Translations under genes and position numbers: made by a program
Part shown: piece after piece, positions 3,001-64,000 of the stretch
Layout: each line of letters starts with the position of its first letter
Numbering within the stretch: the first letter of the stretch is position 1
Source: Pavona decussata
Taxonomy: Eukaryota
DNA: 64,000 nucleotides
Direction of reading: 5' to 3'
NCBI GenBank assembly: GCA_977016875.1
Contig: CDRNST010000006.1
Span: 3,658,001 to 3,722,000, forward strand
The notes under the pieces: generated by a model
The model's database searches: none
The model's input: only the letters and a program-made list of their open reading frames with translations
Told to the model about the DNA's origin: nothing

Positions 3001-6000
3001 GGATGTTCTTGTGCTTAAGTTTAATGATTTGTGATTCCAATGTGTTGATGTGTACTGAACCCAGTAAATTTGACAATAATTGAAGTGCTGAGAGCATAAC
3101 CGCCCTAAATGACTTTTAAGATTGATCGCTTTTTGTTGTAAGTTTTAGCTCAGATTCACCAGCTTTCCCATTTATTAGGGCTTGAATTCCATCAGGGAAT
3201 GTTGATCCAATGTTTTACCCGCTGCTTTGCGCTTTGTTTGCAAATTTTTATTTATTTAAAAACCTGTCGTTATGGGCAAGATTTCCATTTTTATCACAAA
3301 ACGAAGTGTAAAGCAGCCAATAAAACATTGGAACAATTTTTCCTGAAGGGATTCAAGGCCACATGCAAAAATACAGTGAATCTGACCTAAAATAACAAAA
3401 AGCAACCTGAAAAGTCATTTAGGTCGGTTATGGTCTCGGCCCTTCAATTTTAAGTTCAAGCCACTCTAAGTGTGATGATTAATTCTTCAATAGTGCTATC
3501 ACTGCATGAACATAATTCACAGAGTCATTTAGTTTGTCCTTTACTCCTGGGATGGGGAGGGTTGACCTCCCTAACAACACCTAAGCAGCTATGTGTCACC
3601 CATTGGGGTCATGATTTTGTGACTCTTGGTCTAGAACACAGTATCCATACCTCGGGCATTTTCTAGAATGGGGTATAATAAATTATTGCAAATGTACTCA
3701 AGCTTCAAAAATAACACTAAAATAACAATAATAATTATTTTGAACTCAAATTAGTATTGCATCCCTTATGCTGAAACAGATAGGGAAAGACAACAAAAAT
3801 CTGATTTGTGTGGAGACACAACTTTAGCATTTCAGATATATCAGTTGAACGAACAGGGGTTATGAAATTTAAAGAACATCTACAATGGGGCATAAAAAAT
3901 TGCCAATTTCTAGAGGAATACACTTAAGGAGCAGGGTCCAAATTTCTAGGCCTTGGCCTGTGTTCAGCTGAAGGCGGTTTACTAAGTAATATATCAAACA
4001 CAAGAAGGTGTGTTTCATCAGATATCCAAACACTGAGAAGTAGGTTGAAAAAACGAGGTGCACTCGAGTTTTTTAAAATGACTTTGAGGTGTTTGGAGGT
4101 CTGATGAAACACACTTTCAAGTGTTTGATATGGCTTCTCAAATGATCAATAATTCTCGGAGAAATTCAAGGCTAAAGTTGGCAAAATTTTATGGTAATTA
4201 GGAACACATATCCAAACCACAGCGACGGTAATGATTTTCTTTGTTTTCTCTTGATGAATTATTAATGAGTTTGAAAAGGATAGGGAACCCAAAGAGAGTG
4301 ACAGAAAATTCTTTGGAATGACCAACTGCAGAAAACTTGCACTTATCTTAAGATGCTTTATGTAACCTGGCCCTGGATGGCAAATATTTACCCAAAATTT
4401 TCTCAGACCTCCCCTGCTGGTGGTAGGGGGCATCTTCCAAACCCTGCTACTCTTCCCAAAGAATGTTTTTTCCTTAATCAGGTTGCATAAGGAGAGGCTA
4501 AATTATGTACAATGTACCTGGTCTCATCACAAAGTCATGGGTGAAACTGTCATTGTCTTCTTCAATCCTACCAAATGAAAAAAAATTAATGTAGTCTGTT
4601 ATATATCAAATAAGCTAGAACTTGAGCTCTAAGCCCAGTTGTTCAAAGCCTGATTAAGCCAATCCTTGTTTAACATGAACTTTGATTACTAATCATGTAC
4701 AACCAGATAAATTTTAGAAACATCCATGCAGTTTGGTGGTGTTTTCTTGAAAAAAGATATTGGACGATGTTAGAAATGGGTACAGGAGGCAAGTCAATGT
4801 TGAGGCACTTTTTGCTATCCTTTTATGATAAAAAAAGGTTCAAGCTCACCTTGGTTTGATTTCTTCTTGTTTTCTTTTTCTTACACTTGTAAAATTGTAA
4901 TAGCCAGTAGATTCCTTACAGATGCCTTCAGGTTCTTTCAAGTCTATACACACGTGCTGTACTAGTTTGGAATTCCTAGCTACCTCTGCAGTTGCCAAAG
5001 TGAAGTTTCTTTCACTTGTTAAATCAACTGTACTGCATCTTGATGGAGACTGGAAGGAGTCATTAGCAAAGGATGCAGTGGTGCTTGATACTGGTGACAA
5101 ACTGTCTCCTGTGACAGTCTCAAGCTTCTCAGCTAAACCACAACCTTCATCTGTCAGGGAATATCTGAAAACAAAACAAAAAAGTCTATTGCTTCCAATG
5201 AGCCTCAACACAGCTAGTAGTTAGCGGATGTTAATTTGACTTTTCACAGCTATGATTTGGACTTTTTTTTTTCAAAAGTATACGTGTAGCATGTACTAGA
5301 CATCTATAGAGGTCACTGTACATCTCCACTTAAATTATTTATATAAACAGTGAAGTTGCTATTATAATAATTACATCATAGAATTATTTCGTATCAGAAA
5401 TGTAGTTAACTGCAGGGTTGATACTCAAAAAATATTTCATTTAGCTTGTAAAAAAACACACCTGACCATATGCAAACCTGTGGAAGGTACAGTAAAATAA
5501 ATAAGGATCTGATGAAAGCAACAAACAACAACAACTTCATTTAACTATCACGAAAAATTATAAAAACAATGGCATGGCAGGGGCAAGGAAATTTTAACAT
5601 TAATTTTTTACTTAAAAGTTATATTTGCCCGTTTTACAATACCTGGCAGGGTTGTTTGTCTTGAGAATAAAGCCTTTCTTGATCAGTGTGGACATAGAAG
5701 ACCAAGCTGTGTAATGACTCCCGGGATCAGGCTATGGCAATAACAAGCACTTAGTCAGTTGTGTTAAGCTAGTTGAAAGGTTGTGTTCTATTGCAGTCAG
5801 CCATTTTCAGTTGGTTGCAGGCAGTGCTTGTGTCTTTTTCTTTTGTGTTTTGACATTTCTTTGCAATTTGGTTCTGAATAGTTTTCCCACTGCTACCATA
5901 CAATCAAACAGGTTGGGTTTGGTCAGATCTTCAGAAGTAAATGTTAAGATAAATACTGTACTTAAGTTTTGAAATGTTATGTTTACGGTGCATGCTGCTG

Positions 6001-48697: not shown

Positions 48698-50947
48698 TTA
48701 ACTGAGATTTTTCGACCAGAAGGAGTGTAGTGTCGCCTTCTTTGACGCTGTTCCTGATTGTTCCCGTTTTCTCTTGCCTCTATAACTTGCCGCCTCAGTA
48801 CTCCTACGATTGTCGGAGTTACAGGTATTTTTCCCCTCACCTGAATTGTTCCGTGATACAATCTCTCTGATCGTTGCCTTGTTTAGGCATAAGTCAATAT
48901 GCTTATTCAGTTCAATCATGGCGTCTTCACTCGGCTTTATTAATTGTTCTTGTCCACACACAGGACACAGCAGAGCGGACGGGTTGCAGGTTCCCGCACA
49001 TTTTACCTCGTTGGATTTTGAACACGCGATTTGCTCAACGGACGATGATGAGCACGAAATATCCGAGTCTTCAGTTTTATCAGTGTCGAGGAAATCTGAT
49101 GGTTGTGCCACCAGACAAAGTTCTTTACTTAAATTTTCGTCAGCAGGCTGTTCATCGATGGAAAACTCCTCGGTGGTAAACTCATGGGTAGGAGTGAAAA
49201 AACTGGCAGTTTTCAAATGCGATACATTTCCCTTTGGTTTTAAAAACTCTGTAATTGTGTTCTGTCGTCCATCTTTTGATGAATCAGAAATACAATCTTG
49301 AAAGTTTGACAGGCGAACTCCCATGAGGCGGAGTCTGAGTGGGTCTGGAGAACAAGCACTGATTTCATTTTTAAGCAGCTCCTTAGCTGCTAGGCAAATC
49401 TCTTCGTAAGTGGAAATGGGGTTGAGTGGTGACAAAGATCGAGACTTTACTTCAAAGTTCACAGTCTTGAGCTTAATTGTGACGGTCTTTCCTTTAAGCT
49501 TCTGTCTTTTCAAGTCTTCTGCCAGTGATTGACACAGCTTATCGCACATATCGAGTAGCTCTTCTGGTTTACTCATTTCTGGAAAGGTTGTCTCTGTTCC
49601 CATGCTCTTCCTTTTGGAGTCAGTCGCAATTGAAGTGTTTCCTAGGCCAAGTGAGACTTGTAATAAGAATCGGAAGCTGATTGGAGAGTGCAGGAGATAG
49701 AGCAAGTCTCGTTTCATGTAGAGATCTTTGCAGGTCTCTATGCCTAGAGCTTTGAGCATCTGCTCGCTAACTCTTCCAATTCCACTTATTTTCCTTATTG
49801 GCAGTTTGTGAACAAACTCTAAAACAACCTCGTAGTCTGGCTTTAGGAAAAACTGTCCGTTGGGTTTGTTACGATCTGAGCAGACCTTTGCAAGTAGGAC
49901 ATTAGGTGCGATTCCGGCACTCGCTGTAAGGCGAGTTTTCTGTTCAATTCGAAAACGTAACTCCCTCACAACTTCTTCTACATCGTTACCAAATTCCACA
50001 ATCTCACTAGCCATCATTTCATGGTCTTGCTTTGTTTCAATTCCTGGCCATGGTTGCGAATGATCTTTTGATCTTGTGAAGGTCCTTTTCTCTTTGTTTT
50101 CTCGCCTCTCTCTGAGGTACTCTGTCAGATCCAAATATGCTTCATCTAAACTTGCCATTGCAAAATTAGGGTCATACTCGGTTAAGATTTCTTGTACTTG
50201 GCGACTATATTCTTTATATTTCTCAAAGTGAGGGGGTACAATGACAAGTTCGGGACATAACTTCTTGGCTATGAACCCTGGCATAGCTGCCCTAACACCG
50301 TAACGCCTAGCAGGATAGTTTGATGTAGACAACATTGCGTTACCTCCTACAGCCATGGGTTTGTCACGCAATTCAGGATTGTCTAAGATTTCGACTGCAG
50401 CATAGAACGCGTCCATGTCAATATGAACGAAGGTACGACTTAAATCGCGCGTTTTTTCCAATTCTTTTACGATCAGTTGTGTGGTTTGTAATGCTTCTTG
50501 TCTCTGCTGCTCGGTGATTTTTTCAAGGCAGGCGGTTTGTTTTCTGATCCTCTCAGCGACTTGTTTATCTTTCTTCAATTCATTCTCATAGAACCGAGAA
50601 CCTTTGCTTGCTTCAAATATGATTTGGTTGATTTTTTCCTTATCAAGACCTACCATTCCTGCTTTATGATCATTTAGCTCCATTCTGGTGAGACTTTTTG
50701 AGCTATCTGTTGTCTTCTTTCCGTCTTTCTCAACAATCACTTTATCCTGCTCGACGTCTTGGTTTATAACGTCTTTGGTGTTTGAATTTTCCTCCCTTTC
50801 TATACCATTCCTTGACCAGATATTACTCCCAAGGCTTCTCCATTCCATTTCTGGTACGCTAAATATTTCAGTCCACTCACTAGATTCGTCTTCCTCTTCT
50901 AAATCGTGGAAGTTATCTTCAACGTAATTCAAGCTGTGGTCCGCCAT
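48698..50947 (-). CDS. POLK: DNA polymerase kappa (Y-family, DinB), single coding exon, 749 aa
   Basis: N-clasp RMELNDHKAGMVGLDKEKINQIIFEASKGSRFYENE; catalytic HIDMDAFYAAVE and SLDEAYLD; STSNYPARRYGVRAAMPGFIAKKLCP; ASAGIAPN..AKVCSDRNKPNGQ; PAD ending LRLRLMGVRLS; PIP-like QNTITEFL; RIR-like SFF; UBZ4 CPVC..NKHIDLCL; C-terminal PIP-like TLHSFW. Start taken at aaaATGGCG (50947). Confidence 0.96.
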   Translation of the reverse strand: MADHSLNYVEDNFHDLEEEDESSEWTEIFSVPEMEWRSLGSNIWSRNGIEREENSNTKDVINQDVEQDKVIVEKDGKKTTDSSKSLTRMELNDHKAGMVGLDKEKINQIIFEASKGSRFYENELKKDKQVAERIRKQTACLEKITEQQRQEALQTTQLIVKELEKTRDLSRTFVHIDMDAFYAAVEILDNPELRDKPMAVGGNAMLSTSNYPARRYGVRAAMPGFIAKKLCPELVIVPPHFEKYKEYSRQVQEILTEYDPNFAMASLDEAYLDLTEYLRERRENKEKRTFTRSKDHSQPWPGIETKQDHEMMASEIVEFGNDVEEVVRELRFRIEQKTRLTASAGIAPNVLLAKVCSDRNKPNGQFFLKPDYEVVLEFVHKLPIRKISGIGRVSEQMLKALGIETCKDLYMKRDLLYLLHSPISFRFLLQVSLGLGNTSIATDSKRKSMGTETTFPEMSKPEELLDMCDKLCQSLAEDLKRQKLKGKTVTIKLKTVNFEVKSRSLSPLNPISTYEEICLAAKELLKNEISACSPDPLRLRLMGVRLSNFQDCISDSSKDGRQNTITEFLKPKGNVSHLKTASFFTPTHEFTTEEFSIDEQPADENLSKELCLVAQPSDFLDTDKTEDSDISCSSSSVEQIACSKSNEVKCAGTCNPSALLCPVCGQEQLIKPSEDAMIELNKHIDLCLNKATIREIVSRNNSGEGKNTCNSDNRRSTEAASYRGKRKREQSGTASKKATLHSFWSKNLS

Positions 50948-51067
50948 TTTGAAGTAGATTGGTAACCAGGCCAAATTCCTTTTTCCCGCCAATAGGCGTC
51001 TCGTTCGTAAACAAAAAATCGTGCAGCGTTCATCGGAACGAAGTCCACGATCAAAGCGGTGAGAAAA
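50941..51067. promoter_or_regulatory. Ultra-compact bidirectional promoter between POLK and the MBD-PHD-F-box gene
   Basis: ATGs at 50947 (-) and 51068 (+). Motif matches: YY1-like CCGCCATTTT 50941-50950, TTTGAA 50948-50953, ATTGG 50958-50962, E2F-like TTTTCCCGCC 50981-50990, CCAAT 50989-50993. Confidence 0.65.
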
Positions 51068-54000
51068 ATGGCTAAAAAGAGACCACATTCACAATGCCAA
51101 ATAATTCCCCATGATCATTTTGGTAAGTGAGTCGTAATATTGAGAGGAAATTTCAAAATTTCTGATGTTTCTACCGTGACGTTCAGCCCCTCAAACAGCT
51201 ATCACAGCAAACCACGCGAGCTCCACGCATGTAAAAATATTGCTTCTGTTGCTTTGCAAATTCCTCAACAGAACTGTAAGCAGAACTCAAGTTTGTTTTA
51301 TTATAAAACTTTCAGTGCTAGATTTGTATTCTACTCGATCGAATTTAAGCTTCTAATTATATAGTAAAAAGTACAGCAAGGAATGTATAGTATTTGCAGG
51401 CAATTAAGAACTTTTAATTTGCGTGAAGAATGCGTTTTTTTTTTCATGCAAGGACACTTTGAAATTGTGTGCACAGTACCTCTATAATTATGAAATTATG
51501 TGCACAATAAAATGCGCCCTAATTATGAAATATTATGTGCACAATAACTCCAGAATTATGTAATTATGTGCACAATTACCCCTCAATCATACAACCCGAA
51601 TTAATTATGTCAGTGACAAAATTCGAGATTAGAAAGTCTTTGTTAACTTTTCCACAATGTTTCTAGCAATTTTGTAAGTAATAACAAAACAGTAAAAAAA
51701 AGAACCAATTCAAGTGCACCTTGTTATGCAAGGCCTGGTAACACAAGCTCTGGGAAAATTTTGTTTGGACATTCATTGTAAGTAAGTGGACATGGAAACT
51801 TTTAGAAAAAGTAACTGTTGTTTATTGAATCTGTATCAATAAAACAATAGATAACAAAACAACAATATAACTCCAGTTGTTATCAGTACAAAACCTAACT
51901 AAACAGACAATTTCTCATCAAAATATGAGACTTAAAGTATTTTTGTTGTTCTAGACAACATAATATTGTTCATTATGTGCAGTCCAACCTCTATTAATTA
52001 CCAGCCCAACAAATATATATTCAAACACAATGCTCATAGTCCTTGGCTTGTAGTGAACAAAACGCAACGTGAAACCTCCCTGTGGAGTTTATTATTCGCT
52101 CCCCGAAGGGAATTTTGACTCTCTTGAAAGAGATTATTTGCTCCCCGAAGGAGATACGACTCTTGAAAAGGGTTTAACATTGCGACACGGAAAAGATATC
52201 CAGCTGCGCAAAGCACTTGACCACCATGACACGTAAACAAGCGCGTCGATGGAGTCGTACAAATTATTTCTGTTAGTATCTAATTGCCATAAATTGTCAA
52301 AAGACCTGGCAAATCCTTTACAAACAAGTTTTCCATAAATGCGAAGACAGCGGTGCTTGATTCTTGAGCTGAAATGGTTTAAACTCATTGTAAAAAAATG
52401 AACTCACCTTTTAAACGATGCAATCGAACATGATGTGACAAAGCGAGTTGTGAGCACATGGCGAAAATCGGAGCTTTTTAGTAAAGATCGTGTGACTACG
52501 TGTTAATTCCGGAAGACATTTGAAGCCACTTGAAGCAATCGTCAACAAGCGTTGAGCGATCGAACATATTCAGAACAAACAAGACTAAAATTGGGGAATA
52601 TCGGGTGAAAATCGGCAGAGTTCATTCATATTCTATTGTTACACTCACTCACTCAACACGGTGACATAGTGGCGTTCGCCTCTATATAGGAGCCAATAGC
52701 CACAAAAAGAAGCTAAATGCACTTGCTTGACACTTGCATACGACTGTTGCTTCCGCAAGTATTTATGAAGTTTAAAGTTCAGTATTCCAAAATTACTTAC
52801 CTTTTAAAACAAATTCCTTAAGAGTGACAAATGAAACTACTTCTGCAAAGTTCTTACTTAATTTCCATGCTTTAAACAATGACATTTGCCTAAGATATGT
52901 CAAAGGCCATGTGCAATGACCCATGAATAACCAAATCCCTTAGATTGTGGCAATTATCAAATGCCAGCCCATATCTGTGCAGAGCTGAACTTGAGTCAAA
53001 TGCCTGGGGTATGCTGGGTAGGGGTGGGCGAGGGGGGATGATCATACAGATGCACATGAAGTATTAGCCTCCCACACTTGCCTCTGTGGGGGGTGGGGGA
53101 GGGTAATACAGCTACCCTAAAAATGACTGTGTGAGAGACTAATACAGTGTTGATAAATCTAGTTAAAGAAAGTTATAACTGGACAGCTGCAGAATAAGAT
53201 GTTTAAATTACGTAACTTCATGTTACAACGTAACAAGAATGCGTAAGCTCAGTATTACTTTGAAAATGTGCTATAAAAGCAAGATATATGTAGATAACTT
53301 GTGGTATTAAGTCACTCTTCTTGCCTAGATGGCCCTATGGAATCCTCGATTATAATTCTGAACTCTTTTAATGGAAACTTTTAATTCTCTAATCCTGCTC
53401 GTAATAACAACCCAGTGTGCATGCTCGTGATGCAATATAAGACACTACATCTCTCCCTTCCTCTAAGAATGAGAAGGGTAAATGTCACTATGAAAATGTC
53501 ACTATGAACAAAAACAAAAACAAAACTCAACATATCGTTTCCTTAGACTATCTGTCCAAATAATGTTCAAGTTACATAGTCCTTGAAATGTTCAGGCAAA
53601 TGTTCAAGTTACATAGTTCTTGAAATGTTCCAGGCAAATGTTCAAGTCACAAAGTCCTTGAAATGTTCAGGCACTCTTCTTGTTCTTTCCGATCTGCGAA
53701 GTGCAGGTGGTGCTTCTGGTTCATCCTCAACTGCTTCATCTGCTTCATGATATCCTTCAGCTACATCAACTGCTTCAGCTGTCTCAATGCTGAGTGTAAA
53801 TTTTTCTTCCTCGTCACTTGGAATGAGTTGTACTGGTACGCTGGAAGACAGCTTTTTAAAGAATGACGCATTTCTGGTTACAGTGCGTTCTGCGTTTTGG
53901 GCCGTAATCATGCTTCCTTTCTTGTCTTTTATCTCAAATGGCTCAGGTTTAAATGGTGTGGACATCTTGTTCTGCTTGGGCTGTTTTAGGTGCAATACTT

Positions 54001-57000
54001 TGTCACCAACACTTAGGTCTGTGTTTTTGGCATGGCTGCACCTATCCGCATATTCTTTCATCTCTGTCTTTCTCTTGGCATCGGTTTGTCTAACCTCTCA
54101 AGGTGCCAGATCGTGTTGTATCTGAGGTAGTGTGGACTTGAGTTTTCGTCCATTCAACAATTCAGATGGAGACTTTCCTGTGGTGCTGTGGGGGGTTGCC
54201 CTGTACTGTCGAAGAAAGGTAACACCTCTTGCTTCCAGTTCTTGCCTTCTATGACCGCTGTCCTAATTGCCTTCTCTAGCGTTCTCATCAGTCTCTCCGC
54301 CTCCCCATTTGCTGTGGGCCATATAGGAGTTATTCTGCGATGAGTGAAACCAAGGTGAGTGGCAAACTTTTGGAAATCTTCGCTGTTGAAAGGTGGACCA
54401 TTGTCAGTTCTCCCATCCTTGTCGCCAGTTATGGAATCCTCGATTATAATTCTGAACTCTTTTAATGGAAACTTCTACTTCTCTAATCCTGCTCGTAATA
54501 ACAACCCAGTGCGCACGCTCATAACGCAATATAAGACACTACAATAACAGGCCCAACATTTTTTTATTTGCCCCTGCCCTTTCCTTTATCACCTTGTTTC
54601 AGTTTGTAGTATCCTTTTTAAAAATCAGATGTTTTTTGTTAAATTCTGAGCAGGAGATGATAGTCCTGTGTTACTCAACATCCCACAGATGCAGAAGCCT
54701 TTTGACTATGGTGAGATATGATAATTTATAACCATCTGTAATAATATATCAATAAATTATAATTATTGTTTTGTCAAAGAAACAGAATACAGTGTTATTT
54801 AGTAAAGCCAGAGGAGCATACTTGTATTAATTTGTTCTTTGAACCATTAATATTTTGTGATAATTTTCTACTCACCAACATTTCCTGAGTTAAATATAAT
54901 ATGTGATTTTTTGTATTGATATCACACAGTTCTCAGATTTTTTTCCCAACAATTTTTGATCATCGCCAAAGGAAATCTGAAGAGGTACTGACATTTCCAG
55001 AAATACTTTGCCAAAAATCTCCAATTACTGGTAAGATTTCTGAATATTGCAAAAGGTAGCCCAAGTGTCCAAAGAGAACTGTGACTACAGCTATGTGTTG
55101 TCCAGAATGAATTGAATTTACATGGTATGTGGCATGCACTGTGGCATATAGAGATGAGATGGCTGTTTTGGAGCTACAGTTTTTTTTGGTTAAGAAATTG
55201 TTAATTCCTGTCTCCATGACTGTCTTAGACACTACACTCAGCTGAGCTGTTACGATTTGAATTCATTTTTAATTTTCCTCCAGGTTGGCAACGGGAGATT
55301 ATTTATCGGCATGTAGGATCTGGCAGAAACAGTGATGTCATTTATGTCACACCATGTGGAAAAAAATTGGTACGGTAACTGAAACAAAAAATTATTCTAG
55401 AATTTTCTTGACGTAGACTATGCAGCTTGTGTTTGTTAGGAAATACCACACTTTAAAAAAATATTCTCATCTTTTCTTATAGAATTGTCGGGCTGATGTG
55501 GAAAAGTACTGTAAGTAATGGCTCACAAAAGTTCCCAGCACTTACACTTTGATAGCTTAATACTATGACTCTCAATCAGTTCATGCAACAACAATGTTAT
55601 CAAACAAATCCTTAATCATTGGTAAACAAGTCGTGGTCATTTTCTTAACATAATAGGTTACCATAGCAACACTATAACTAGTTCAAAACACCCCTTATTT
55701 TAGCTTTAAGTGGTTATAACTAAAAAAGGAGCTTGGTGACCCCAATTTCTTTTCTTTTTTCTTTTTTTTTTTTGGAACTGTGATATGTCATTCCATGCAT
55801 CAATAATTCAACCAGTGTATATCGACCGGTGTCACCTATAGGAAGCATGATTTATGTACTTTGTGTTTTGATTTTTATCAGTGAGAACAGAGAAGATAAG
55901 CTATTTATCTCCAGACTGGTTTTCTTTTGACAATCATGTTCTGGTTGGAGGAGGAGATAAGGAGGTACGTAAGTAAAGGATTTTACACAAGACTATCTTA
56001 ATTCAGTGACTTTTCAAATAGAAATTGTTCTGAATATTTATAAGCACTATTTTTGCACAGAGCCTGGTTATCATGTAAGAGACAGTATTTATTATTACTT
56101 TGTTCTGCATTTAGTTTTTGAACAAAATGCTCTAACACAAAGAGTTAGCCTATTCCTTTTTGCTTGTAACTGAGCCAGCTGAAGCAAAGATTTACTAGAG
56201 GTAAGCAAAATAAACCATACAAGTGCATTTTAAAGAAAAGTAATAAGCTAGAAGAGTTTTTTCTGAGCCTTTTGCTCAAAAACTAAAACGCAGATAATTT
56301 GAACTATTAAGTTTGTTACATGATAACCAATGTCTGTACCAAAACAGAGCTTATTAAAGCAATTTGATTTCAAGGCAGAAAAGTTGGTAAAATTGAAGAA
56401 TAGCTCCCCCACAAATCTGTCGGGTGACTATCGGTAAACTGTCGGCCACAAATTACTGACAGATTACCAACAAGGTAACTGTGTGATAATTCTCCTCACT
56501 TACAGCACTGAGTCTTGCGTAATATAAGGAAGTGTTGGATGCCATCCTCCTCCCATGTTTTATGTAATGTTTAAAACACGAGCAGCAGTGTTTTAGCGAG
56601 ATTTAGACCCAATAAAACACGTGCTGCAAGTTTTTTTAACGGCCTCAAAAACATTCCTGGAAAAGCGTGTGTCAAGAGATTTCATAACAATGATGCTTTT
56701 GTGAACATTGGAAATTAGCATATGAGAAAACATTAAACACCGCAAATTAATAAGGACAAAGTTTTATCGGGTTTTAAAACCAATGCACATGATGTTTCAT
56801 CGACCTTCGATAGGTCAGTGGGCTTATGAATTATTAATGAGTTTTGAAGGAAATATAAAATGGTTGATTATTTTGGGGTTATTTATATTTTTGATTATTT
56901 TTCATTAAAATTATATATACGGGCCTATCATGACTTGGGTGTAGGGTCTTCTACCCCCCCCTCCCCCCTGCAGCTTCTAACATCAAGACTCTTTATTTAC

Positions 57001-60000
57001 TTACAACTTCCTTACGTAGGCAAAAAAGGTGAACAATTAGTAGCCAACTGTATTTGTAAAGTTGGCCGCTCATTTAAAGAAACAGCCTCTGTAAAAGTCC
57101 TTGTTTTAGTGCCAGACAACTAAACTTTCCTTTTTTACCAACTTGAAGGATAAAACACCACTGTTAAGCAAATCTTTTGTTGTATATAATTTAAATGTCC
57201 AGGTTGTGGATTATCATACATATTTGGTAAAACTAATAGAACACTACGCAAACTCTTACTAGAACATGCATGTGACAACAATAGTGTTGTTTAAATGAGC
57301 ACCTATCTAAGTGTGAAGGTTTTTTAAAAGTTTATCAGGAGCTTGTTTGAAATCCAGATTGATTCCCTGCACTCTCTAGACAAATTATACAAGATAATAC
57401 CACAGGCTGTAATTGCTCAAGCAAACCATTGGAATGTGCTACTTTTTAAAGAGGCCTTAATGATTAAACATTGCACAGCCAATCTGAACTTGGGACTGAA
57501 GGGGTTAAGGGACCTACAGTTGTTCTAACATAATTGTAATTTCAAATTACTAGACTAAGTATAGTTTCTTGTAGCCTTTTCTATTTGTGATCATTACCTG
57601 ATGATGTTGTTGAAATAAACAACGAAAAATTATATAAAATTATGTCTGTCAAATCCCGCATCCTTGTAATCTAAATCTTAGATTTGTGACATGCAGTTCT
57701 TTGGACTCACGTTTACATGTATACTTGACTGTCTGTTGTCCCCATTTCCAGCCTCTCCACTGTCAATTTATTGATTGAAGTCCTGTACCATTTGTGAAAT
57801 CTTTATTCAGTTGACCATCTCTGTCATCCTCCAGTCCACTCTCTGCACTCCCCACTTAAGTACTATATCATTAAGATTATTGGACTCTGAGTACAGAATA
57901 CTACCTACGTGTGTGGACTATGCAATGTAAGCGGACAGAAAATTAGTATATAAAAGTGCACTGTCTGCAGGTGGTTGCTTACATTTTAGCAGAAGCATAT
58001 CAGTTTTTCAAGCGGATAATTTTATGTTTCTGACTTTAGTTATAGGGATGTGTTTAATAGGGAAGTGGGTTTTTCTTAAGAGAGGTGATTGCTGTTAATT
58101 ACTTGTATTTATTTGCCATAATAATAATTTATGTAAATTTCAGGTATCTCGTGCCACATCAGTTGCACCTACACAGTCTGAGCCATGGAGAAAATCCAAG
58201 TAAGCTTGTGCTTGTCCATCATAATAATATTATGCTGATGTTGTTGTTGTTACAGTTGCAAACAGTAATTATTTCCAAACCTACATGTATGGTTATTCAC
58301 AGTACTTTTTCTCTTTGGGGAGGGTTTGTTTTTCTTGTACAGGGGAACGATGTGGTGGTGGTATTTATTAGAGGGAATTTTGTTTTTCATTATTGGTTGG
58401 ATATGACAATAAAAGACAAAGCTAACCGCTTAAAACAGCCAACTTGGTGGGAGACCATCACGGAAGACATAAACAGTGAGATAAAAATGTATAATTTTGC
58501 AATAAATTCAACAAAAATATAACACTAGAGCTTCCAAGAGTTTCTCAGAGAGTAATTTAAGTTATTCATTTTCTTTATCGCAATAATGTGGGGGAAATGT
58601 CACTCACCTGTTGGGCTGTAAACTTGTTTTTCCTTTTGTTAATTTCTTTGAGTTTGATTTCCAAAACAAAACAAACTTGACACATATAGTAGGACTGGCA
58701 AAACCTCATACTAATCAATAGCCATACTGGGATAGTTGTCTCTCCCCCACCCCCTCCCCCTCCCAGTTATTCAGCTTATAAGGTAGATGTGGCAGGATTA
58801 CATAATTTATTGCACTGTGCAACTTGTAGGTGGTCTACAGTGGTGATATGTACAAGATATTGTCCTGATCGAAACAATGCCAGGCCTTCACTGCAATGCA
58901 AAATGTGCAAATCCTTCTTTCATCCTGAATGTGTGTTTCTTCCACCAACGGAAGTCAAGAAATATAAAGACTGCTATGTTTGCACAGTAAGTTGAATCCT
59001 ATTGATACTGGTAGTGAGGTCAGGATTTTTGATATTGTTCACTGATTTCTTTGCGAAATATTATGTTAATTGTCTCTGTCAATACTTTCCTGTTTTGAAT
59101 TGAGGAGCTCTGAAGAGCTGGAGGGTTAATTGTCAACTTAACATCGATTTGTACTTTCTGTGGGGCATCTCTACGTACTGTACTTTTAAGACCTAGCACG
59201 CAATGTGTCATTGTTGTATTTAATAATATCAATAGTCACATTGCAATATGTTGCGACATTGTCTTGAGACAGATCAGTTCGCCTTTTCTGTGTGGCTAAA
59301 CCAGTGAATGCTGAAATTCATGTCTCCTTTGCTTTGATGTAGTTTCTTCTAAGCAATTAGCACAACCCTGACCATTGGCCCAGACCTTGAATGTTGTCTA
59401 GCTATAAATGCATGATAGAAGGGTTTTTAAAAGTCGCACTTGGTCATGACGTCTATTTATTCACTGTTCAGCTGTATAAAAATTTACTCTCCCTCCCTCC
59501 CTCCCTCTCTCCCTCCCTCCCTCCCTCCCTTTGGAGGTTGATCTGTAATATTATTAAATGAGTTAAGTCTGTGTAGCAACTTATTTTTGGTTGACCTGCC
59601 AATATTTCGGTCCGACTCGGCAGCGCTGGTGAGATAAGTGAGGCACGAGGTCCTTCAGTTAATTAGGTTTGCACGTTGCTGGCCTTGGGCTTCATCTCGT
59701 AGTACTGCCAATTTGCAGCATGTTGCTGGTCTAGGTTGCAGCTCGTAATGCTGCCATTGCAGCATGTTGCTGGTCTAGGTTGCAGCTCGTAATGCTGCCA
59801 TTGCAGCATGTTGCTGCCTAGGTTGCAGCTCGTAATGCTGTCATTGCAGCATGTTGCTGGCCTAGGTTGCAGCTCGTAATGCTGCCATTGCAGCATGTTG
59901 CTGATCTAGATTGCAGCTCGTAATGCTGCCATTGCAGCATGTTGCTGGCCTAGGTTGCAGCTCGTAATGCTGCCATTGCAGCATGTTGCTGGTCTAGGTT

Positions 60001-63000
60001 GCAGCTCATAATGCTGCCATTGCAGCATTTTGCTGGCCTAGGTTGCAGCTCGTAATGCTGCCATTGCAGCATGTTGCTGGTCTAGGTTGCAGCTCATAAT
60101 GCTGCCACATCAGCATGTTGCTGGTCTAGGGTGCAGCTCTTAATGCTGCCATTGTAGCATGTTGCTGGCCCAGGTTGCAGCTTGTAATGCTGCAATTGCG
60201 GCATGTTGCCATATCAGCTTGTAGTGCCAGGAGAAGTGAGGCCTTGAAATGGACATGTAATTGGAGTCATCAGTCACGCTAATTGCCGAGTGCTCAGCCT
60301 TCCCCAAATTTATGCCTGATGCATCTTGTAGTCCTGTAGTGTTACTCTATGTTTTGTTAAAGCTCATGTGTCTAGATACTCTAAAGGGAGCAGTGACATT
60401 ACTTCTTAACAGTCTTTCCTAACCTCTTTACTTGAGTTTTCATTACCCCAGCGTTAGTTATCTAACTACATTGTAGGTCATAGCTGGAATATATTTCCAA
60501 GTAAGGCCTATGAATATTTGGCTTTGTCAACTGAGTTGATATTAGGTTATTAGACCACTGTAACGAAATTCGAGAGTTCTTGATTCTCTGTATGGTAGCC
60601 AAAATGATAACTTTTACTATCATTCACGAGTTCGCGCACAGAGCACTTTGATTTCGAACAAGTAGTATTCGACTTATTAGCTTAGATTTATATTTTCTAT
60701 AACACGGTGAATATTCAATAACGGCTGGGAGTTGTTTTTAAAGCCGCCAGTATTTACGCAGCGGATAAGATTCGAAATATGATAGCTGTCGCTCGTTGAT
60801 TTCATAAAATGCTAATTTTGTGTTTGTCGTTAACCCGTTGAAGTCTTTTGTTTTGTTTGACAATACCACACAAAGAGAACTTACAGCGATGAATGACAAT
60901 GGCAAAAACGCGCACATTTAGACACGTCTAAAAATACGCGCATGCACGTTTTTGCTGCGTATAAAACGCGTCTGCGTAGTTCGCTTAATTCTGGCCTGCA
61001 CTGTAGGTGATAAACCAAAAATTCATTTCCAGTCTCCACCAGTGATGCAGTATGACAGTTCTTTAGAAATGTAACCTCTCATCTATTATTTTGTACAGAC
61101 CAAAACTGCTTTTTCCTAATTATATATTTGCAGCACTGTCTGCTAGAGGAAAATCCAGATGCACTCAAAGTCAAAATCAAGTTAACGGATGTGTGTCCTG
61201 TTCTCAAGTTATCATTTGATTGCCTGCTACACATCTTGTCTTATCTCCCACTCATTGATTTGTGCAGGTATGTGTATGGGTCATTCTTGACCATTGGAAA
61301 CATTGCAACGACACATGTTGCTTTTCATGGTATCCCAGAATTTCTGTTTTAGAATGCTGGCCAACTCTACTAGTAGTCATCTGTACAACACAATGTACAG
61401 TAATGAAGACAAAATACTTGCAAAGTATTTTTAACTGCATTTTTGTCAGTTTTACAAGTAGTCCATGTACCAGTAGTCAAAATGAAAACAAAAATTTAAA
61501 TTATACATGTAGCAACTCACACATCTATAATTTAAGATTGAATTTCACTGGAAAAGTGGTTAAAGTTCTTCAATGACATGAAATCACAGCTTCACTGCAA
61601 TGGGCACATCTTGATCACAAGATGGAGATTCTTCTGACAGCCATTGAAGCCAATCCATAAAATTACAGATGAACTTTCATGTATTTGTGGTTTTACAACC
61701 AAAAATACATGAAAATGGTCCTCGTTTCCTGTGTCCTTAATGCCACTATCAGAGCTCTCCTATCTCATGTCTCCATGTCTGATGCCACCAAACATGTTTC
61801 TGCATCCCCATCAAACACACAAGTTTTATTAGACATTGATTGTACATTGTGCAGTTCTAGAAAAAATCCATACCCACCCTGAGGAAGGTCATTGGAAATT
61901 CCTAGGGGGAGGGGGATCTTAAAAAGTCAAAATTTTAGAAGGATTCAAGTATGAAGCTAAACTGGAATATTTTCCTTGGGGGAGGGGGTGCAAACAAAAA
62001 CCTTCTGTTGGGGGGTGGGGGGGGGGAGTATGGATGTTTTCTGGAACTGCACATTTGACTTGTGGTATAATTTTTCTCTTGCGAGTGCCATAGTTGCCCT
62101 TGGGTGATTTGGTGCTGCTGATAAGTCACACTGGTTACTAGTACTTGTTATCTTATCACAATGAGTGATACTCTTTTCTGTTTGTAGTGCAAGTTGTGTT
62201 TGCAGTATGTGGAATCAAGTGTCATCCCAGCCCATCCTGGTTAGAACTCAACCTTGCTTTCTATGTTTGTACATAAAATGTTTCAATTGCTTCAAATTAT
62301 GCTACACTCTAAATTAATGTGATATCTGTAATGATCCCTGAATCTATAGGTCTTAATACTATATACAAGGCTGTTGCCTAACGGGAGCCTGGGGCACCCA
62401 AGAAATTGCTCTGGGCACCTAAATTTTTTGCTGCCTGACCAGCTGGGCTCCTTACTTCTTGGCTTTTAGCCTTGTGGGCTCCATGAAATAAATTTATTTT
62501 TCTTAGGCTTGCAAAAGCCTTGGTACGTGTTAACTGCAACAGCCAGATTTAACTCAGCATTTTTAATAAAGCTTGTGAGTCCAACATGGCTGCCAAGCAC
62601 ATGGTCCCATTTCCCAGCATATTTAGCAAGCTAATACACTGCAATAACCTGTATTGGAGGGAGGATGTGCGAGGGGAGGGGGTGGGGAGGTATTGTAAGG
62701 TCAACTCAGAGGAGATGTCACAGATATAGCCAGTTCCCAGGAGGCTGGGAAGCTGTTGCAGTCATCCAAGTCGCTCTTGAAACTGATTCAGTTTGTTTAT
62801 TCCTATATAATCTGTTCAGCTTTGTTCTGTCTAAATATTTTCACTTCAAATGCAATGTTATTACACTGTAGTAAGTAGGTTTCAGTAATGGTGTTATGTG
62901 ATTCTACAGTGGAGAAGAGTGTCACTGCATGGACTTCAAGTTAAGGACTGGGACATGGCAGTGAGATGGATGATGCAGTTTTCTACTCAGAGACTGGTGG

Positions 63001-63846
63001 GTTGCTAAATTTTGATTCTTCAGAAGGAATACTTTCATCTTTGTGGAGTAATGCCATTGTACTTACAAACTTTTGAATGTATGAACATTAAACTACAGTG
63101 TAGGTTAACTAAAAAAGATGGATAATTAGAGATTTTGTACAACCATTCCCAGTGTTCTGGAACTCTCTCACGGTCTCTTGTCTTGGGTAATTGGTATGCA
63201 GGCAAGTGTTCCATGAAATAACACAAGAAACTCGTAATTGGGAATGTAAGCAGTCGTTGCATAAAACCTCTTGTTATCTAAAGGTTGTCTTATGTACTCA
63301 GGCCATGGATGGTGTGAGAAAAATATTAGATTTCCCCTAAAAAAACCTTGGTTAACCTCCCCAGATGATAAGACTAGGAAATTATTTAAACTGGTAAAAC
63401 TTGTGTACGCAGGACTTGAGAGGCCTTGTACATTGCAAGAATCTTGCCAATTCCTGGTCAACCATTGGAAATGTGTTACGTCAATTATCTGGTCTCAAGA
63501 GGCTGGACTTTGGCCTGGTACCAACCTGGATCCTTCACCAAGTAGCAGAATCTTTACCAGAGTAAGCAGCCAATGTAACAGGGGGTATTTTGCAGAATGC
63601 AGAATGTAGTATTATTTTTACACTCATCTACAACATCTAGGGTTAAGCAATGAATGATAAGTTAGTATTATTTACATGTATGCCCAAACACTTCTCTATA
63701 TTCATTATTACTGATTACACAGATGGTTAGCTTTTAGTTGTTCTTATGACAGACATTTAACATTATAGGACTTCACTCTATGGACTCAGCATTCAACATG
63801 CTGCAAAATAACCCTGCCAGTCATGTTGTGTAGCAATGCACTGCAG
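51068..63846 (+). CDS. MBD domain + PHD finger + F-box (+ probable LRR) protein; continues past the window end
   Basis: Exons 51068-51122, 54654-54710, 55284-55369, 55483-55510, 55882-55964, 58144-58199, 58830-58986, 61134-61267, 62188-62239, 62910-62996, 63769-63846 (last is tentative). All GT-AG, one open frame. MBD: KPFDYGWQREIIYRHVGSGRNSDVIYVTPCGKKLNCRADVEKYL..FSFD. PHD C4HC3: CTRYC..CKMC..HPEC..CTHC. F-box: LSFDCLLHILSYLPLIDLCSASCVCSMWNQVSSQPILWRRVSL. Confidence 0.85.
51460..51590. repeat. Short degenerate tandem repeat (AATTATGTGCACAAT core)
   Basis: Four copies of (a)ttatgtgcacaat/ttgtgtgcacagt interspersed with taattatga. Confidence 0.6.
53336..54543 (-). mobile_element. Miniature, internally deleted Ty3/Gypsy LTR retrotransposon
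   Basis: 114-bp LTRs at 53336-53449 and 54430-54543 (7 mismatches). PBS 54411-54427 (TGGCGACAAGGATGGGA on minus). PPT 53450-53464. Frameshifted integrase C-half: TDNGPPFNSEDF..ITPIWPTANGEAERLMRTL..YRATPHSTTGKSPSELL..LRRSER. Confidence 0.93.
53560..53672. repeat. Three tandem copies of an ~37-bp unit at the integrase stop codon
   Basis: aatgttcaagttacatagtccttgaaatgttcaggca repeated; encodes PEHFKD/NY/FVT* on the minus strand. Confidence 0.8.
56985..57640 (+). mobile_element. Penelope-like retroelement 3' relic (GIY-YIG endonuclease region)
   Basis: Broken frames read IYLQLPYVGKKGEQL..KDKTPLLSKSFVVY/FKCPGCG..GKTNRTL..EHA..LLFKEALMIK..NLNLGLKG..LQLF*, followed by CTGATGA...GAAA. Confidence 0.8.
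59487..59530. repeat. (CCCT)n microsatellite
   Basis: About 11 units. Confidence 0.9.
59664..60225. repeat. 44-bp minisatellite, about 12 copies
   Basis: Unit ctaggttgcagctcgtaatgctgccattgcagcatgttgctgg(t/c), head-to-tail with no spacers, degenerate at both edges. Confidence 0.95.
61849..62052. mobile_element. 204-bp MITE of the GTGCAGTTCCAGAAAA family, ATT TSD
   Basis: Same TIR as 23016-24578; ATT at 61846-61848 and 62053-62055. Confidence 0.85.
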
Positions 63847-63866
63847 GTGCTCTTTTGTCGTCATGT

Positions 63867-63944
63867 AGGGTGGTGTACAAAATTCACTGCAAGGACTGTG
63901 AGGGAGACTATGTCGGAGAGACTGGAAGAGCCTTTAATGCCTTG
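63867..63944 (+). mobile_element. Penelope-like GIY-YIG fragment
   Basis: Reads RVVYKIHCKDCEGDYVGETGRAFNAL, the VVY.I.C..C...YVGETGR signature of Penelope endonucleases. Confidence 0.75.
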
Positions 63945-64000
63945 GAACGGTTTACTATCACAAAACGTTCTGAATATCTGGAAACAGTTTTGTGTTTCTG

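Follow-up and report, generated by a model that had tools for sequence, protein, structure and literature searches.

The MBD proteins of animals are usually listed as MBD1-6, MeCP2, BAZ2 and SETDB. To this list, the MBD-Fbox family adds another kind; to our knowledge, it is absent from the human domain repertoire, and it is said to be missing in vertebrates. The family was named in one sentence by de Mendoza et al. (2019, Genome Res; PMC6673714), and in that work its MBD grouped with those of BAZ2 and SETDB in an outgroup of the methyl-binding clades. In the open-access literature of PubMed Central and in bioRxiv, the term occurs only in that paper, and no function is reported for the family. 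Biochemically, MBD2 requires R166 and R188 to bind methylated CpG (mCG), with Arg-to-Lys changes cutting the binding 8- to 30-fold, and the TAM domain binds the backbone of double-stranded DNA or RNA irrespective of methylation (PMC8600091). Here, we have analyzed a 64,000-nt stretch of the genome of the coral Pavona decussata (assembly GCA_977016875.1, contig CDRNST010000006.1, numbered C6, positions 3658001-3722000; the window), together with the 602 Mb genome that was searched, and we describe a gene in it that joins an MBD to a PHD finger, an F-box and a leucine-rich-repeat-like (LRR-like) region.

The gene lies on the + strand and comprises 18 exons and 625 codons, with exons 1-12 within the window and exons 13-18 in the next ~4.5 kb (Table 1). 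All 18 exons have AG/GT borders, and the joined frame, checked by script, is open, with no stop in 625 codons. We propose, with rather more confidence than doubt, that this coral MBD-Fbox gene encodes an SCF substrate receptor that would be tethered to chromatin, with an MBD of little methyl preference. The F-box would dock on SKP1, and the protein would thereby act as the subunit that selects substrates for an SCF (SKP1-CUL1-RBX1) ubiquitin ligase; the LRR-like arc and a conserved C-terminal block would hold the substrate; and the N-terminal MBD and PHD finger would anchor the ligase on chromatin, where nearby chromatin proteins would become ubiquitylated. Docking on SKP1 and CUL1-RBX1 is expected because F-box/LRR proteins generally work in this way, and the F-boxes of SKP2 and KDM2B have both been solved in complex with SKP1. 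The coral's own SKP1 gene, split into small exons, is found at C25:1238139-1238745.

The gene is real and expressed. Assembled Logan contigs of four public runs were compared with positions 55270-61269, and in two of them (X1 and X2, two studies of the same organism), five GT..AG joints are present: 55369/55483, 55510/55882, 55964/58144, 58199/58830 and 58986/61134. One 889-nt contig of X1 carries exons 4-9 consecutively, with 86 nt upstream and 258 nt downstream, and therefore a single mRNA contains the exons for the MBD, the PHD finger and the first F-box half, as the sequence-only reading of this DNA had proposed. That reading would have been refuted by transcripts that fail to link the MBD exons to those for PHD and F-box, and on this point the transcripts support it. 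The piece of this contig that matches 55283-55368 begins exactly where exon 4 does, at its acceptor; the preceding 86 nt agree with exons 2 and 3 together (87 nt). A contig of 846 nt in X2 connects exons 7-9 and extends a further 502 nt. Both runs carry a C>T change at 55931 in exon 6, which is synonymous by frame reading. The metatranscriptome runs X3 and X6 cover repeats in the introns and leave the exons of this stretch uncovered. Upstream of the stretch compared with reads, exon 1 and junction 1-2 are placed by splice signals and frame only, and junctions 2-3 and 3-4 by splice signals, frame and the length of the X1 contig.

The domains were identified with Pfam searches run exon by exon. 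Exon 4 alone matches MBD (PF01429) at 33.3 bits against a cut-off of 21, and at 37.4 bits in the genome-wide scan, which confirms a domain first called from the letters alone. Exon 8 alone matches PHD at 25.3 bits (cut-off 24) and shows the pattern C-x3-C-x11-C-x2-C-x4-H-x2-C, with the last cysteine pair of the C4HC3 finger at the exon 8/9 border; it is 56% identical to its Mnemiopsis counterpart over 34 residues and 65-71% identical in two cnidarian relatives. A linker of ~25-30 residues leads from the PHD finger to the F-box, of which exon 9 carries the first half (Pfam F-box 19.3 bits on profile positions 2-22 of 43, cut-off 20.5; 60-77% identity in relatives). All three modules lie within ~250 residues, a compactness that the first description of the gene had rightly noted. 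It had also suggested a search for leucine-rich repeats beyond base 64000, and six further exons, at +137 to +4489, do continue the gene there. The C-terminal half is LRR-like, with perhaps eight or so repeats predicted, and an LxxLxL periodicity is visible in exons 12-17. The Pfam scans of exons 4 and 6 contain no zf-CXXC match, and the translated exons ahead of the PHD finger hold scattered cysteines and no CXXC-type cluster.

Relatives of the coral protein were found in ctenophores, arthropods and other cnidarians. With the PHD exon as query, phmmer returned 12 proteins at E<=0.001 from 1.84 billion representatives, and the seven that were inspected are one protein with MBD and F-box, an unrelated PHD protein and otherwise fragments. 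The 571-residue Mnemiopsis leidyi protein KAL5248024.1 (P0007) has an MBD (26.5 bits), a PHD-like finger, an F-box-like domain (45.4 bits) and an LRR-like tail. A ctenophore-like protein of 572 residues, 72% identical to it (P0013), is encoded by one intronless open reading frame (ORF) on a 292-kb metagenome contig (L020, 10001-11719), whereas the coral gene has 18 exons; both proteins carry MBD and PHD-like finger, and in both the F-box-like match (45-47 bits) passes its cut-off. On a third ctenophore-like contig, L011, the three domains are spread over separate exons. Three aphid proteins (VVC43512.1 and VVC41308.1 of Cinara cedri and XP_026816770.1 of Rhopalosiphum maidis) combine MBD, F-box and LRR without a PHD finger, with no cysteines between MBD and F-box. 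The aphid proteins were reached only via a springtail-like MBD ORF on contig L010; homologue searches that started from the ctenophore protein, or from an alignment of five proteins, returned only two ctenophore-type clusters. A direct hhalign comparison of the ctenophore and aphid profiles yields a match of 279 columns (probability 97.9%, E 6e-13), and in the ESM Atlas, MBD and F-box occur together in at least three large, mostly arthropod clusters of 53-135 members each.

A family profile built from the five ctenophore and aphid proteins was run on all open pieces of 34 kb around the coral locus, on both strands. At independent E-values (i-E) below 1, it gave seven matches, all on the + strand, within modelled exons and in profile order, and none on the - strand; colinear matches of the same kind occur in L005, L009 and L011. 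Judged by this colinearity and by its domain order, the coral gene is a cnidarian member of the animal MBD-Fbox family. The architecture is one already known and named, to which the coral adds a cnidarian member, and the remark in the sequence-only reading that MBD/F-box proteins had been listed in earlier surveys is correct: the family is the one named in PMC6673714.

The downstream part of the gene is well conserved. L005, a Tara metagenome scaffold, and L009, from another sample, carry an orthologue beside the DNA polymerase kappa gene (POLK), head to head as in the window, with exons 8-18 kept in order; their POLK is only 46% identical to that of the window, and therefore the L005 species is distant. 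For a closer coral relative, L008, 111 codons compared in exons 8-10 give a ratio of nonsynonymous to synonymous substitution rates (dN/dS) of 0.10; dS is saturated, and the intervening intron cannot be aligned. The PHD and F-box exons are thus under purifying selection. In the ~1 kb between POLK and the PHD exon of L005 (8981-10100) and L009 (2591-3710), no MBD was found by tblastn, by Pfam on ten open frames or by the family profile, and the domain seems to have been lost in this lineage. An in-frame ATG lies in the exon-7-like exon of this orthologue, and its product may be a PHD-F-box-LRR protein that lacks the MBD.

The nearest described layout outside the family is that of KDM2 and FBXL19, and the sequence-only reading had placed the gene there, as an FBXL19/KDM2-like protein with an MBD in place of CXXC. 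Taken as descent, this would make the gene a KDM2/FBXL19 paralogue in which an MBD replaced the CXXC domain, with a PHD-F-box-LRR part inherited from KDM2, and which serves methylated DNA as FBXL19 and KDM2B serve unmethylated CpG islands. We consider this unlikely. The order of parts is identical. Against KDM2B (5jh5), the F-box-LRR profile of the family gives a single continuous alignment of ~240 residues (36.0 bits, E ~4e-8), and against KDM2A it scores 27.6 bits, while its match to SKP2 runs mainly via the F-box. Yet SKP2 (36.3 bits, E likewise ~4e-8) scores as high as KDM2B. The coral PHD finger scores only 13.7 bits on the KDM2-type PHD_4 model (PF16866, cut-off 30.6) against 25.3 on the generic one, PHD_4 is not among the Pfam matches of the ctenophore proteins, and the seven inspected phmmer matches include no KDM2-like protein. 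The genome has a PHD_4 locus of its own (C241:291191, 46.5 bits), with an F-box exon 6.8 kb further downstream that comes only 28th among 40 own-genome matches to the family profile. Finally, the MBDs of the coral and the ctenophores lack methyl-reading residues, two of four in the former and all in the latter. With the weak PHD_4 score, the separate PHD_4 locus and the tie between SKP2 and KDM2B, the KDM2-like assignment is unsupported as it was stated; the likeness appears to be one of layout and probably of working mode, with at most weak signs of kinship, rather than one of membership. The strongest own-genome match of the family F-box profile, an 875-residue ORF on C38, was set aside as an ordinary F-box-LRR protein, with F-box and LRR as its only Pfam domains.

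The kind of MBD bears on what the protein would recognize. We aligned the RNA-confirmed MBD segment of the coral gene with the coral's own MBD paralogues and with its relatives. The coral keeps the first arginine finger and the aspartate, which align with MBD2 R166 and its partner aspartate and also with the coral's own MBD2/3 exon; the tyrosine that contacts methyl-cytosine (the first Y of DVYY) is replaced by Ile, and the second arginine finger, at the position of MBD2 R188, by Asn, encoded by the first codon of exon 5 at an RNA-seen junction. The ctenophore MBDs have lost both arginine fingers, the aspartate and the tyrosine, the last replaced by His or Gln. All four residues are kept in aphid proteins P0026 and P0029 and in the springtail, and aphid P0027 keeps both arginine fingers and the tyrosine with Asn in the aspartate column; the second arginine finger is further kept in the coral's BAZ2-like and MBD4/MeCP2-like paralogues. 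Among solved structures, exon 4 matches best the TAM domain of BAZ2B (7win, ungapped, E 0.0069), with MBD2 at E 0.17-0.7, and the ctenophore N-terminus gives the same ranking, with the BAZ2B TAM first at E 0.011. Because the tyrosine and the second arginine are replaced, we expect the coral MBD to bind double-stranded DNA or RNA in a backbone-type manner with little or no preference for methyl-CpG, and methyl-specific reading by it is doubtful.

Alternatively, the protein could be a true methyl-CpG reader, whose MBD would recognize methylated gene bodies and recruit the ligase to the genes that carry them. Methylation of gene bodies occurs in corals and aphids. Its presence in Cnidaria (PMC8857923), the two matching positions of the coral MBD, and the nearly complete set in the aphids and springtail speak for such a role, and we regard it as distinctly improbable for the coral protein, given its Ile and Asn, the ctenophore MBDs with none of the four residues, the drop in mCG binding of MBD2 on a change as mild as Arg to Lys, the branching of the family outside the methyl-binding clades and the TAM domain as best solved match. 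The proposed link between gene-body methylation and ubiquitylation is weakened by the coral and ctenophore residues and by the cnidarian orthologue in which no MBD was found. A methylation-specific role is more plausible for the arthropod members. The genome holds other MBD loci (C80:4092444, C84:2980303, C67:2701584, C90:1812844 and C99:204304), which appear to comprise one MBD4/MeCP2-like and one BAZ2-like gene, MBD2/3 and a pair of near-identical copies of a divergent MBD; this pair may be haplotigs or a recent duplicate.

The protein might alternatively act as a non-degradative scaffold, in which the F-box-LRR part and SKP1 assemble a chromatin-modifying complex, as KDM2B does in PRC1.1, without CUL1-dependent degradation. 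The unbroken alignment with KDM2B and the chromatin-type N-terminal domains are what such a scaffold would show; against them stands the equal similarity to SKP2, a classic SCF receptor, no partner is known, and the sequence offers nothing to separate scaffold use from SCF use. We give this alternative little credence and retain the chromatin-tethered SCF receptor as the preferred reading.

Several points nevertheless weigh against that receptor. KDM2B uses its F-box-LRR part and SKP1 mainly for a Polycomb complex and not for a CUL1 ligase; therefore, an F-box alone does not prove degradation. The F-box of the coral protein is split over three exons (9-11), no single one of which reaches the Pfam cut-off. 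Pfam LRR models gave no match on the single coral exons 12-18, and the LRR_14 scores of the relatives, 19.9 and 34.7 bits, stay under the curated cut-off of 40; the family profile does match many solved LRR proteins, at E 1e-5 to 1e-7. AlphaFold2 models of the ctenophore N-terminal 165 residues and of residues 160-571, made from two-row alignments, reached a predicted local distance difference test score (pLDDT) of 37 and 31, are unusable and provide no evidence on the fold. Exon 1 and exons 10-18 are without read support. The distant cnidarian orthologue without a detectable MBD suggests that this domain may be dispensable for the core function. That the MBD and the PHD/F-box exons are two genes brought together by chimeric assembly or read-through, or a decaying pseudogene, is very improbable: although the runs are only presumed to be RNA and are stored as assembled contigs, and although that orthologue lacks the MBD, five introns are skipped exactly at GT..AG and in frame in two studies, the same domain order stands in the single intronless ORF of P0013 on L020, dN/dS is low and the 625 codons are free of stops.

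Table 1. Exons of the coral MBD-Fbox gene, in window coordinates except in the last row, where positions count past base 64000 (L003).
Feature	Position	Strand	Content	Basis
Exon 1 (predicted)	51068..51122	+	ATG, 18 codons, phase 1 out	GTAAGT donor; frame runs into exon 2
Exon 2	54654..54710	+	N-terminal lead-in to MBD	AG/GT borders, frame
Exon 3 (30 nt)	55001..55030	+	MBD start, residues ahead of GW motif	AG/GT borders
Exon 4	55284..55369	+	MBD core: beta strands, first arginine finger, Asp	Pfam; RNA joint
Exon 5 (28 nt)	55483..55510	+	MBD; Asn replaces second arginine finger	RNA joints on both sides (X1, X2)
Exon 6	55882..55964	+	Helix of the MBD; SPDWFSF motif at its C-terminal end	RNA joints on both sides
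Exon 7 (56 nt)	58144..58199	+	Linker	RNA joints on both sides (X1, X2)
Exon 8 (157 nt)	58830..58986	+	PHD finger	Pfam PHD; RNA joints on both sides
Exon 9	61134..61267	+	Last PHD cysteine, linker, first F-box half	RNA joint to exon 8 (X1, X2)
Exon 10 (52 nt)	62188..62239	+	Second F-box half	Ctenophore F-box match; not seen in reads
Exon 11	62910..62996	+	Post-F-box segment WRRVSL..TQRL	AG/GT borders, frame; not seen in reads
Exon 12	63413..63561	+	First LRR-like repeat	AG/GT borders, frame
Exons 13-18	137-217, 774-930, 1616-1723, 2666-2766, 3376-3478, 4136-4489 (stop)	+		Relatives, AG/GT borders, frame

The exon set of the sequence-only reading survives in large part. Its first eleven exons, of 28-157 nt, which start at 51068, place the MBD at 54654-55964 and end in ..TQRL, have AG/GT borders and share one frame; its terminal piece at 63769-63846, which would have added 'DF', does not stand. 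That piece lies in a repeat (63582-63800, with >40 genomic copies), draws no Pfam match and is missing from the conserved blocks of L005; its place is taken by the conserved exon 12 at 63413-63561. The ATG of exon 1 has A at -3 and G at +4; no counterpart of this exon was found in the relatives, and the in-frame Met of exon 2 would be an alternative start. The PVLL motif of exon 2 recurs in the ctenophore N-terminus, and the exon weakly matches the family profile at positions 11-29. The SPDWFSF motif of exon 6 is common to the coral and ctenophore orthologues, and EPWRKS at the tail of exon 7 is kept in L005. A one-exon PHD at 58783-58986 was rejected, as the RNA shows exon 7 and the acceptor at 58830, and a second F-box exon near 61540 was rejected for want of an AG acceptor in the right phase. 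The true exon 10, found with the ctenophore protein, is the only local AG..GT exon that both links exons 9 and 11 in frame and resembles the ctenophore F-box; it matches the family profile at positions 223-243 and is kept in L005 and L008. Exon 11 shows 52% identity in L005 and a family-profile match at positions 242-260. Exon 12 and those beyond it were located by comparison with the ctenophore protein and the related cnidarian contig L005, to which exon 12 is 41% identical over 49 residues (E 3e-9); it also matches the family profile at positions 271-322 (i-E 0.017).

The POLK gene of the window (48698-51088, - strand) is an intronless ORF of 796 codons (IMS 166 bits, IMS_C 75 bits) that stands head to head with the MBD-Fbox gene and overlaps the first exon of the latter by 21 nt; around the ctenophore-like copy on L020, no POLK is present within 10 kb. 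The introns are rich in repeated sequence. The 3.5-kb first intron contains, on the - strand, a 139-codon ORF (53642-54061) that resembles a retroelement integrase tail and is probably a transposon remnant. Intron 6 contains a dispersed repeat of ~290 bp (56556-56849), for which a first look at the genome gives >2,400 candidate copies of 84-91% identity; its depth is very high in all four RNA runs, up to ~81,000, and it looks like a short interspersed element (SINE) or a miniature inverted-repeat transposable element (MITE), with no Rfam match. Across 51000-64000, no Rfam family was found at the gathering score. Intron 8 carries a tandem array with a period of ~44 nt (59640-60230), with contig joints of differing length into 60232, which suggests that its copy number varies between individuals. 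In intron 12, after the >40-copy repeat, an open frame at 63834-63998 looks by eye like a GIY-YIG nuclease of the kind found in Penelope-like elements, and Pfam gives no match to it.

The locus extends the MBD-Fbox family back to cnidarians and ctenophores, and its early-branching members carry a PHD finger as well. Their domain make-up points to a direct route from the recognition of chromatin or nucleic acid to the ubiquitin system, in animals with gene-body methylation, and this link is testable in Nematostella, aphids and Mnemiopsis. At the same time, methyl-reading residues have been lost unevenly across the family, and one cnidarian seems to have lost the MBD altogether, which calls for caution in naming a protein a 'methylation reader' from a domain match alone. 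More speculatively, MBD-PHD-F-box-LRR might be an ancestral, pre-bilaterian, chromatin-anchored ubiquitin-ligase adaptor, retained whole in cnidarians and ctenophores and reduced to MBD-F-box-LRR in aphids and to MBD-PHD in springtails, which, where the reading residues are kept, would couple DNA methylation and a PHD-read histone mark to the ubiquitylation of chromatin proteins and would have no vertebrate counterpart; we offer this tentatively and think it unlikely.

Set beside the systems described so far, the coral protein compares as follows. With the MBD-Fbox family, it shares the order of N-terminal MBD, F-box and LRR-like C-terminal half, colinear exon by exon; it differs from the aphid members, which have no PHD finger where the coral and ctenophore proteins carry one between MBD and F-box, and which keep most methyl-reading residues. 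With the springtail protein of Orchesella cincta, ODM98753.1 (P0020; L010 521-2574; MBD 56.8 bits), it shares an MBD, there canonical, followed by a finger, C-x3-C-P..P-x-L-x-C-x2-C-x3-(F/Y)H-x2-C, whereas no F-box or LRR was found in the annotated springtail protein or on the similar contig L010, and the C-terminal half of that protein is proline-rich; the name it bears, 'Immunoglobulin A1 protease autotransporter', probably results from a mistake in annotation, and the protein may represent a sister architecture. With the TAM domains of BAZ2A and BAZ2B, the coral MBD has the PCGKKL and KYL..FSF motifs in common; the coral gene has none of their DDT, WHIM and bromodomain context, and BAZ2A has Lys where the coral has Arg at the first finger. 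In the TAM domains, a BAZ-specific beta hairpin is added to the MBD-like core to form a five-stranded sheet. With SKP2 and other FBXL receptors, it shares an FBXL-type F-box followed by an LRR or LRR-like region, SKP2 being the top solved F-box match, whereas SKP2 is without chromatin-reading domains. With KDM2A, KDM2B and FBXL19, finally, it shares the order of DNA-binding module, PHD, F-box and LRR or LRR-like part, and with it the expectation of an SKP1-bound F-box protein anchored on DNA; it differs in carrying an MBD where KDM2 has CXXC, in a PHD finger that falls below the PHD_4 cut-off and in showing no JmjC domain.

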